A stretch of 64,000 nucleotides of DNA from Schmidtea polychroa (Eukaryota). Both the position numbers and the translations under genes were made by a program. The stretch is taken from assembly GCA_044892525.1 (NCBI GenBank), contig CM097885.1:4650001-4714000 (forward strand), in the 5' to 3' direction. The notes under the pieces are model-generated. The model saw nothing but the letters and a program-made list of their open reading frames with translations, did not search any database and was not told the origin of the DNA. Position 1 is the stretch's first letter. Each line of letters starts with the position of its first letter. Positions 12,089-25,820 of this stretch are shown piece by piece.

Positions 12089-12187
<99 letters not shown>

Positions 12188-13142
12188 TTATAAAGTAATT
12201 ATTTTGGAAGACATACAAAATTGGGTGCGAATTTAATAAATATTATCAATTGACACTTTGGGAATGAAATGTGTACTTGTGAAAATATTGATTAAATTGT
12301 ATAAAATTTGAAATTATTTTACCCATTCAATTCTCCGAAAAAACAGCAAATGTCATTTATTACAATTTTATGCGTGGATTTGGTGGGATATTTTTATGAA
12401 TGATAATTGGAGGAATCGTGGGTGTCGGTCTAGTGAATATGTTTGATGGGTTTCTTGCTGTCGTTGATTCTCTGTTCAGAAAATCTTTGCCTTTTCTATC
12501 GGTTGTTTTTGTTGTTGTTGTTTTTATTGTGCCGTTTCGGTGCCTTTGATTCATTCTCATTGTCGGCAAGCCGGTAGCTAATTTCGTAATAAATTTGGAC
12601 TGTGTTTCCCCTGTCGTATGATGTAATCATTATCACACGAATCAACTTTCTCGCTAAAACTCGCCATGTGGTTAATGAATGTGGACGACATGGAGAAATT
12701 ATCTCTCCTGTTTCCAGATTATAAAGTGATAAATCACCGATTCGGTTTCACATGATTGCGTAATTTTTTATGGTCAATCTCTCCATTTGATTTGCACTTT
12801 GATCTGATATATTATTATTAAATTAAATATTTAATAAAAACAGCTTTAAATTTGCAATATTTATTGGATTTTTCCTTCTTATGAAAGCTATTACCTCCAC
12901 ATTCGAGTACCTCTTCCTCCCTTTGACCTTTCCTCGAGGATATTAAACTGCATATATAAGTGTATATGCAATGGAGTTATGTGTTATAGAGCCCCTCCGT
13001 ATCCATTGAATTTAATGGTTTATAAACCAGGGAAGCCATAAATCCAAGGGCGCTTAAGAACTTAACAAATAAAAAGATATTTTTATGATATTTATTGTTG
13101 CTCAGTTCAGTTTGGTTCCATGAGAGAATTAATGACAGTTCC

Positions 13143-23510: not shown

Positions 23511-24422
23511 GATGCATTTTTGGAATGGGTATATTGGGTGATGGTTGACATAGAATAACTGTCGTTGTAGAAGTTAAAATTTATTTTTATTCAAATTGTC
23601 TTTCTTAGGTGTCTTTTTTGGTGGTAGTGTTATTATGTTATATTGAATATTGACTACTGTGCTCCAATGTTTCAGTGACACGTGGGGGCGCAAATTTTAT
23701 ACCTTGCGCCAGGTTAATATTTTGTGGTAAAGATTAAACAAGTTATTGATTAAAGTTACTAAAAAATGAAGGCCGAAGGAAATGTAATAAGAATAATGGT
23801 GAACAAGATAAAAGATTTTGCCGATCCTTGTAAGCTTCAGGACATGTTAATATTTCGTCAAAATAATATATATTTATTTTTGTTTGATTGCACTTTTATC
23901 TTTTATATTCATGTCCCCTTCATAACCTCCTTTCACCATAAGTTACTAGTACAATGTCGATTACCTTTTTTCTTGCCATTTTTGCGTATTTTTGTTACAT
24001 TATTTCAAACCTTTCAGGAGTCACTAAGCATTTACCTTCCTTGAACCTAATATTTAAAACGCCAAAACCTGCATTAAATTAGAAGAATTTACTAGATGTA
24101 CCTCTGGTATGTAAACATGGAGAAATCAGTGAAGTGTGAAAATTGAAGATTTTCCTAACGGTTTCCTATACAATGTAACGACTCGAGTCACGCCAAGGAA
24201 TGCTGTCACATTTGTTGTCGGGCATCGTTTACGCCAGTCAGTTGTTGTGATTCTTGTTGAATGTGCCATCTGTATCATATGTCATTTATTTTCACTTTCC
24301 TGCCTCAGATTTCATTTTTTAAATAAACACAAATTGAGTTTAAAAAAACATTTAAATATAAATTTCTATTGATTTTTAACTGTGAAATCAGTGAAGCGTG
24401 AAAAAATATTAAAAATTCCTAC

Positions 24423-24510
24423 TTGTTAAAATGGAATTCCTTTTCTAACTCAAGGGTTTGATGGCGAGTGTAAGTTTGTCGAGTTCGTTTATTGTTTGAA
24501 CTATTGGGAT
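24423..24510 (-). CDS. Lox5: Lox5 exon 2: linker plus homeodomain N-terminal arm and helix 1
   Basis: tttaag|AT CCC...AAC AA|gtagg = (N)[28 protein letters not shown](K). It is 88 nt and its phases match exons 1 and 3. Confidence 0.93.
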
Positions 24511-24555
24511 CTTAAATACGTTTATAGCTAATGAATGTAACCAATAGTTACTTAC

Positions 24556-25021
24556 TGTCGGCTCCTGATTTCGGATTCATCCATGAGTAGAGCATCACGC
24601 TGTTGTTATTGGAATTTCCGTTATTGTCTGAGGGTTTCGAGTTCAAATTTTCGAAGCTGTTCATTGACGGACAAATGAGATGTCTACAGTTCTGTGAGTA
24701 AGCAGAAAACTGAGAAGTCGGAAGGTGAGGTACTGAGCTGAGATATGATTCATCGAATGAGAGGTCGTGTGGATGGAAATGTGAAGACCAAGAAGAATTC
24801 GGAAACGTTTTGGAATTTGAGTAGAGATTATTGGCGATAAAAGATCCAAAATGATCACTGGAGGGCACTTTTGTCAATGAAACTGGCCAATATCGTCCAA
24901 TACCAGTCGATGGATTGGATTTTGGTAGAGTGTTTGTTGAATGGTGAGCTGAGGGTCTCGATGCTGAGAGTTTATTTGGAGAGGTTTGAAAGGGATTTTG
25001 AATATTCTGATCAACGTGCAT
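24556..25021 (-). CDS. Lox5: Lox5 exon 1 with hexapeptide
   Basis: ORF MHVDQNIQNPF...SVMLYSWMNPKSGAD (YPWM-type hexapeptide). Donor GAC A|gtaagt, followed by a 45-nt intron. Confidence 0.88.
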
Positions 25022-25750
25022 TATATCGACTTCAATAGTCTATCTGTGATTTATGTATATTGTGCATTCCTATAAGAGTCAAATCCAGATTCCACGATGG
25101 AAAAATTGACCAATCAAATCTCTCTAAAAGATCATTAACAAGTATTGCCGGTATTGCCGGAGAGGTGTGCTTTCACAGTTTCTCTCGTTACGTGTGACCA
25201 GCTAGTGGTTCATCCTGTCAGTGTCTAACCTCCATTAATCTGGGAAAACTAGAGAAAGTTGCCATTAGCCGATAATGCGAACCAATATAATTAATATTCA
25301 TTTTCCATCAACCAGCATTTACAGAGAATCAACCATATGCCGTGATTATCCGGGACACATGTTTCCAATGCCCCTAGCCGTGACCACAAAGGAGCTCCGT
25401 GTGCGGAGGAAATGGTACAGTGATTTTGTTGAGTAGGGAATCAAGTTGTTTCAATTCTTGTCAAATACGCTCGCTGGCTTTCCTTTAATTCGTTGATAGG
25501 GAAAGGTAAGATGGATTGATAAAATATGTTGATATTCAATTCTGGAAAATATTCCTAGTCGGAGCCCCAAGAGATNNNNNNNNNNNNNNNNNNNNNNNNN
25601 NNNNNNNNNNNNNNNNNNNNNNNNNNNNNNNNNNNNNNNNNNNNNNNNNNNNNNNNNNNNNNNNNNNNNNNNNNNNNNNNNNNNNNNNNNNNNNNNNNNN
25701 NNNNNNNNNNNNNNNNTAGAAGTGTCCTTGGATAATGACAGTGGATAGGT

Positions 25751-25820
25751 CGCGGTGAAAAATCAAAGCCGAAAAATAAAGCGGTTACATCAAAGGGAGC
25801 TTTGATTGCAAACCGCCAAT
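25751..25820. promoter_or_regulatory. Candidate Wnt-response element: three TCF/LEF sites plus helper-like sites
   Basis: ATCAAAG 25762-25768, ATCAAAG 25789-25795 and CTTTGAT 25800-25806, interleaved with GCCG, GCGG and CCGCC. Confidence 0.55.

Follow-up and report, generated by a model that had tools for sequence, protein, structure and literature searches.

A conserved cluster of TCF-type sites with helper motifs upstream of planarian lox5a, a candidate site of direct Wnt control over posterior Hox genes

The window, by which we mean the whole 64-kb stretch of DNA that was analysed (G000:C1:4650001-4714000), belongs to a genome of 781 Mb, with four chromosomes and a GC content of 30%, which was also the target of the genome-wide searches described below. 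It contains a Lox5-type and a Post-2/Abd-B-like gene that are arranged head-to-head, their ATGs lying 9.6 kb apart:

24555–25021, minus strand: lox5a coding exon 1, with its ATG at 25021, ending in a hexapeptide-like YSWMNPKS that is followed by a GT donor
24422–24500, minus strand: lox5a exon 2, encoding the N-terminal third of the homeodomain (accurate to 1–2 nt)
12097–12172, minus strand: lox5a exon 3, encoding the rest of the homeodomain and running into an N mask
34648–35135, plus strand: start of a Post-2-type Hox gene, probably post-2c, with homeobox part 1 at 35001–35135 and helix 3 at approximately 37766–37822

The closest named protein to lox5a was the Girardia tigrina homeodomain protein (P0002), with the Lox5 signature KLTGP. 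The lox5a homeobox is split after approximately homeodomain residue 21 by an intron of about 12 kb, and an identical split was found in another planarian, where the donor follows ...FHFNK (L001:2290-2370).

Published tables for Schmidtea mediterranea list lox5a as SMESG000022667 and post-2c as SMESG000022668, and an analysis notebook places Lox5a in front of post-2c on dd_Smes_g4_189. Currie 2016 found two Hox genes together on a single contig only, and the lox5a/post-2c pair is reported to be the last remaining Hox linkage in the otherwise atomised Hox complement of S. mediterranea. Judged from this adjacency rather than from a sequence match, the pair in the window very probably corresponds to lox5a/post-2c. 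With the identity of the genes taken from the adjacent identifiers, the dependence of these Hox genes on Wnt/beta-catenin signalling that the earlier note took as established agrees with the literature, in which the flanking genes are beta-catenin- and wnt1-dependent: both lox5a and post-2c drop quickly after beta-catenin-1 RNAi (log2FC of about –2.0 to –2.4), and both are reduced after wnt1 RNAi.

On the upstream side of lox5a, exact CTTTGAT/ATCAAAG 7-mers are located at 25762–25768 (minus strand), 25789–25795 (minus strand) and 25800–25806 (plus strand), spanning 45 bp in total, with GC-rich motifs between and beside them (GCGGT at 25752–25756 and at 25781–25785, and ACCGCCA at 25812–25818). 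The earlier note had reported three such 7-mers within 45 bp, interleaved with GC-rich motifs and lying about 750 bp upstream of Lox5, and each of these observations was recovered, the distance from the cluster to the lox5a ATG (25021, minus strand) being 741 bp. All three cores match the CTTTGWW(S) HMG consensus, the trailing S being present only in core B (25789–25795), and cores A (25800–25806) and B form a perfect inverted repeat across a 4-nt spacer.

The 7-mer as such is not enriched in the window (19 observed versus 17.6 expected). Chance should produce 0.0014 triples within 45 bp per window and, with all orientations counted, about 18 in the whole genome, and a genome pattern search for the same orientation class with gaps of at most 30 bp returned 4 clusters in 781 Mb and 0 in the reversed control, against a Poisson estimate of about 6 for this class genome-wide. 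The triple cluster by itself is therefore not beyond genome-wide chance; it is lifted above chance by its position, its helper motifs and its conservation. Another of the four clusters in this orientation class (L094, G000:C3:22546665-22546779) has four cores in 115 bp together with CCGAGCGG-type GC motifs, and is located about 1.9 kb upstream of an Hsp90-like 691-aa ORF.

Each of the three cores was found to be followed, on its own strand, by 3–5 nt and then by ACCGC. We classified these arrangements according to Archbold 2014, whose oligos combine an 11-bp HMG site (CCTTTGATCTT) with a 7-bp helper (GCCGCCA), and in whose scheme FF denotes a helper 3′ of the HMG site on the same strand:

25799–25818, plus strand: TCF pair A, core CTTTGAT at 25800–25806, 2-nt spacer, helper ACCGCCA at 25812–25818; FF2
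25779–25796, minus strand: TCF pair B, core CTTTGAT at 25795–25789, ACCGC at 25785–25781 directly after the 11-bp HMG site; FF0
25750–25769, minus strand: TCF pair C, core CTTTGAT at 25768–25762, 2-nt spacer after the 11-bp site, ACCGCG at 25756–25751; FF2

As helper we accepted the consensus taken from the literature (RCCGCC or GCCGCCR, with the short form RCCG) at approximately 0–11 bp from the HMG site. The helper of pair A (ACCGCCA) matches the full RCCGCCR, and those of pairs B (ACCGCT) and C (ACCGCG) match the extended consensus at 5 of 6 positions and contain the short RCCG form. According to Archbold 2014, FF0 and AK6 are the best-bound and most active arrangements, and peaks bound by Pangolin are enriched for FF0–2 and AK0–6. 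The FF2, FF0 and FF2 arrangements observed here thus fall within those favoured by C-clamp TCFs, on the assumption that the rules established in the fly transfer to planarians.

Searched genome-wide, CTTTGAT-N(3–5)-ACCGC occurred 50 times versus 44 times in the reversed control, which indicates no general enrichment, and 3 of these 50 pairs are located within 65 bp at this locus, no second locus having three; because the ACCGC helper was defined from the lox5a locus itself, these pair statistics are partly circular. Within the 64-kb window, RCCG or CGGY was present within 12 bp of only 7 of the 69 CTTTGWW cores, and five of these seven sit between 25762 and 26965, a stretch of 1.2 kb.

This stretch includes a second TCF-type module (26887–26971), about 1.9 kb upstream of lox5a. 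Its first site is a CTTTGAT at 26887–26893 (plus strand) with GCCG four nucleotides downstream at 26898–26901 (sequence context CTTTGATCTT), and in its other site an ATCAAAG (26959–26965) abuts a perfect GCCGCCG helper (26965–26971). The two modules are located 0.7–1.9 kb from lox5a and 7.7–8.9 kb from the post-2c ATG. Apart from these, just one CTTTGAT of the window has a helper-like motif nearby. It is located at 12544–12550, with CGGT 2 nt upstream, in the large lox5a intron and 370 bp from the homeobox exon. Elsewhere in the genome, a lone CTTTGAT-N3-ACCGC pair (L092, G000:C4:23250814) was observed 3.4 kb upstream of a Meis/Prep-type TALE homeobox exon (…NWFINARRRILQPMLD).

Conservation was assessed by comparison with a 2.7-kb Logan contig (L001, run SRR33002330) from another planarian, which was retrieved by a protein search with lox5a exon 1 through its 173-aa ORF (P0001; 60–64% amino-acid identity) and which has the same gene structure of exon 1, short intron and exon 2. 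Because the genome of the window matches this contig at the lox5a locus only, we consider it to be the ortholog. The 1.7 kb of upstream sequence common to both consists of discrete conserved blocks with unalignable DNA between them:

25022–25300, minus strand: proximal promoter of lox5a, 78% identity, with CCAAT-like and TATA-like boxes by eye
25301–25575 and 25941–26095: in-between stretches, 45–48% identity, unalignable
25576–25716: N mask, adjoining the TCF-site block on the gene side and hiding its promoter-side edge
25717–25940, minus strand: conserved non-coding block of about 220 bp with the TCF sites, upstream of lox5a
25861–25940, minus strand: distal part of this block, 91% identical, the most conserved part and outside the TCF cores
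26096–26240: further upstream conserved block, 77% identity
24555–25021: coding exon 1 for comparison, 66.5% nucleotide identity

The block at 25717–25940 aligned to L001:737-974 with 83% identity (181/218; BLASTN E = 2e-51), and is thus found at the orthologous position with an identity above that of its 45–48% flanks. Its distal part shows, by eye, a CACCC/Sp-KLF-like box overlapping an E-box (CACCTG), two GATA-like sites and a TAATTG, and might correspond to the sp5 footprint published near these promoters. The block at 26096–26240 contains a conserved GCCGCCG without an adjacent HMG core, and a homeodomain-like motif (CAATTAAAT). The second TCF-type module lies beyond the end of the contig.

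In pairs A and B, both the core and the ACCGC are identical in the other planarian, and core C reads CTTTGAA there, which still matches CTTTGWW, with its helper and spacing unchanged. All three core-to-helper spacings and all three ACCGC motifs are therefore unchanged, while the spacer between cores A and B differs at 4 of its 4 nucleotides. Over 25752–25816, conservation amounted to 35 of 36 motif positions versus 18 of 29 spacer positions (one-sided Fisher p = 3e-4), with p = 0.045 for the HMG cores alone, in what is one pairwise comparison with one other planarian. Such selective conservation of the motifs is the pattern that would be expected of binding sites under selection, as far as a single pairwise comparison can indicate. 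Protein searches with Lox5 exon 1, one of them an exhaustive search of representatives, yielded four proteins, P0001–P0004, for which the usable upstream sequence amounted to the 2.7-kb contig of P0001 and about 120 bp for P0003, P0002 (Girardia) and P0004 coming without DNA. Scanning metagenomes with an 18-nt stretch of the block that avoids the TCF sites yielded 68 matches, all of them unrelated.

Searching 25717–25990 against the 781-Mb genome returned the self-match only, and because the block is single-copy it is not a transposable element; the multiple copies by which a TE-derived block would be recognised were not encountered in this whole-genome search. The earlier note had named membership of a TE family and a lack of conservation as findings that would speak against its enhancer reading, and neither materialised, given the single copy and the 83% identity in another planarian.

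Five loci with a TCF-type HMG box (HIKKPLNAFMLFMKEMR...) were found in the genome:

C1:201946267: L076
C1:61088440: L077
C1:17468236: L078
C2:139534025: L079
C2:27028584: L082

When the regions downstream of these boxes were translated, a C-clamp was found within 3 kb only at the C2:139534025 locus (G000:C2:139534025-139534231, minus strand), which lies 74 kb downstream of a weak beta-catenin-binding-domain match. Approximately 300 nt past this HMG box, a sequence is encoded that ends at an exon boundary and that we take to be the first half of a C-clamp of the kind known from fly and human. A search with a degenerate DNA pattern for the second half gave no match. The organism thus appears to encode a TCF with a C-clamp, represented by the first half of the clamp at this locus. 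This, together with the ACCGC at FF0–2 spacing beside all three cores, strengthens the idea of helper sites put forward in the earlier note. Three planarian TCFs were described by Su 2017, and the expression of published planarian TCFs is described as mainly in the CNS. Among the papers searched, none described a C-clamp/helper code for planarians, and a PAE-family search for notum, as an independent Wnt-target control, gave no exon-level match.

Published regulatory data concern the same genes. In Pascual-Carreras 2023, CREs are called from ATAC and H3K27ac data, with enhancer classes that extend to 10 kb from the TSS, and HMG-type TCF motifs are given for the 'enhancer' CRE of post2c, lox5b and hox4b; the table leaves lox5a unflagged for a TCF motif in promoter and enhancer CREs alike. 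The three genes with TCF motifs in their ATAC/H3K27ac-defined CREs have been proposed as direct Wnt1/beta-catenin-1/TCF targets. Since the enhancer classes reach 10 kb and the present element is located 8.8 kb from the post-2c ATG, it could be the CRE that was scored for post2c. On dd_Smes_g4_189, Neiro 2022 highlights 364625-364675. The CRE catalogue of Pascual-Carreras 2023 and the beta-catenin targets of Tewari 2019 share the genes and the idea with our analysis, but unlike the lox5a element described here, the accessible part of the catalogue comes without coordinates, helper sites or conservation.

Four other readings of the locus were weighed. A cluster that is merely a chance, neutral or repeat-derived feature could draw on the few triple clusters expected in a 781-Mb AT-rich genome, of which four were found in the orientation class, and on the window being without overall enrichment of the 7-mer. 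However, the block is single-copy and holds 3 of the 50 core-helper pairs of the genome, and it recurs with 83% identity at the orthologous position in another planarian, between flanks that cannot be aligned; we therefore regard this reading as extremely improbable and close to refuted. It is also very unlikely that the block is transcribed, as a 5′ exon, a non-coding or structured RNA, or the template of a small peptide. Mechanical ORFs do cross the block in both species and a hairpin between cores A and B is conceivable, but any reading frame shared by the two would be broken by indels of 3, 5 and 1 nt, no covariation is seen in the A/B stem, and the block is separated from the ATG by conserved promoter-like boxes. 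Because these indels relative to L001 break the frame between the species, a coding or peptide reading of the block was rejected. An Rfam search gave no match on the block. Sub-threshold Rfam microRNA matches at 26006–26088 and 26763–26853 coincide with (TA)n/(TG)n microsatellites and are low-complexity artefacts.

Alternatively, a different HMG-box protein, for example a SOX dimer, might occupy the cores, making the block a tissue enhancer without direct Wnt reading. An inverted repeat with a 4-nt spacer is the geometry of dimeric SOX sites, and the A/B palindrome (ATCAAAG-N4-CTTTGAT) has such a spacer, which varies freely; ATCAAAG also formally fits the loose SOX consensus WWCAAWG, and many SOX-type HMG boxes are present in the genome. 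Yet all cores have the TCF optimum, with a T before CAAAG, and not the SOX-preferred ACAAAG or ACAAT, and a SOX dimer would leave the third core and the conserved, constantly spaced ACCGC unexplained, besides the known dependence of lox5a on Wnt. This makes SOX binding an unlikely explanation. Rather unlikely, too, is a real enhancer that is driven by its other motifs (CACCC/Sp5-KLF, E-box, GATA, homeodomain), with an indirect Wnt dependence of lox5a, for example via sp5, and with TCF-like cores that contribute little or only Groucho-mediated repression. The most conserved stretch (25861–25940, 91%) does lie outside the TCF cores, the conservation of the whole block means that the cores could have been carried along with neighbouring motifs, and lox5a is unflagged for TCF in the published CRE table. 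Against this stand the selective conservation of the motif positions relative to their own spacers and a helper architecture that fits the preference of C-clamp TCFs.

Taken together, the block is probably a Wnt-response element in a proximal lox5a enhancer, built as a conserved bipartite module for TCF binding. A planarian TCF bearing a C-clamp would bind each pair with its HMG domain on the core and its C-clamp on the ACCGC. Posterior Wnt signalling would stabilise beta-catenin-1, which would be recruited by the bound TCF to activate lox5a, and without Wnt the bound TCF would be neutral or repressive. The enhancer would also carry the conserved CACCC box, E-box, GATA-like and homeodomain-like sites seen by eye. 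Both TCF binding and the direction of its effect are presumed in this model, and, in view of the co-regulation of the two genes, the module may also act on post-2c over a distance of 8.8 kb. The direct Wnt-response enhancer of the earlier note has accordingly gained partial support, from the helper architecture, the single copy, the conservation and the C-clamp TCF; its suggestion of a bidirectional input, or an input shared by the Hox pair, is something that we only infer. At the level of sequence, the interpretation has so far survived the tests which that note proposed, and the element appears to be a strong candidate for a site at which Wnt acts directly on posterior Hox genes.

The closest known counterparts are the bipartite HMG-Helper modules in the W-CRMs of Drosophila TCF/Pangolin (nkd, Notum; Chang 2008, Archbold 2014) and those of C. 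elegans POP-1. In common with the fly modules, the planarian element has several CTTTGAT-type HMG sites, each accompanied at a distance of a few bp by a GC-rich helper (GCCGCCR/RCCGCC), in the FF0–2 arrangement that is preferred in vitro and in bound peaks, and in a genome where a C-clamp TCF is present. Unlike in the fly modules, the full helper consensus is reached only in pair A, all three pairs are FF, two cores form a tight palindrome, and the element is known from its sequence alone. The vertebrate Sp5 and Axin2 WREs, bound by TCF1E/TCF4E, are likewise clustered, with helper sites, near the promoter of a Wnt feedback or patterning gene, but they differ in target gene and phylum, and the C-clamp is provided there by an alternative isoform.

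The element is newly found and well defined, while the class to which it would belong (bipartite TCF Wnt-response elements) and the Wnt dependence of lox5a were already known; it involves no new mechanism and is not surprising in kind. The directness of the link from Wnt to posterior Hox genes has so far rested on genome-wide motif calls. The element is a concrete, selectively conserved target of 65 bp, with three cores and three helpers as the design for mutations. We consider it rather improbable that the linkage of lox5a and post-2c was kept because both genes read Wnt through the TCF modules as one shared enhancer; if true, such a shared enhancer would tie the posterior Wnt gradient directly, at the molecular level, to Hox expression in an adult animal that regenerates, and would be the reason why this one Hox linkage survived. 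More broadly, the element suggests that the code of HMG and C-clamp helper sites used in flies, worms and by vertebrate E-tail TCFs may work in flatworms, which would sharpen the prediction of Wnt targets in the planarian genome.
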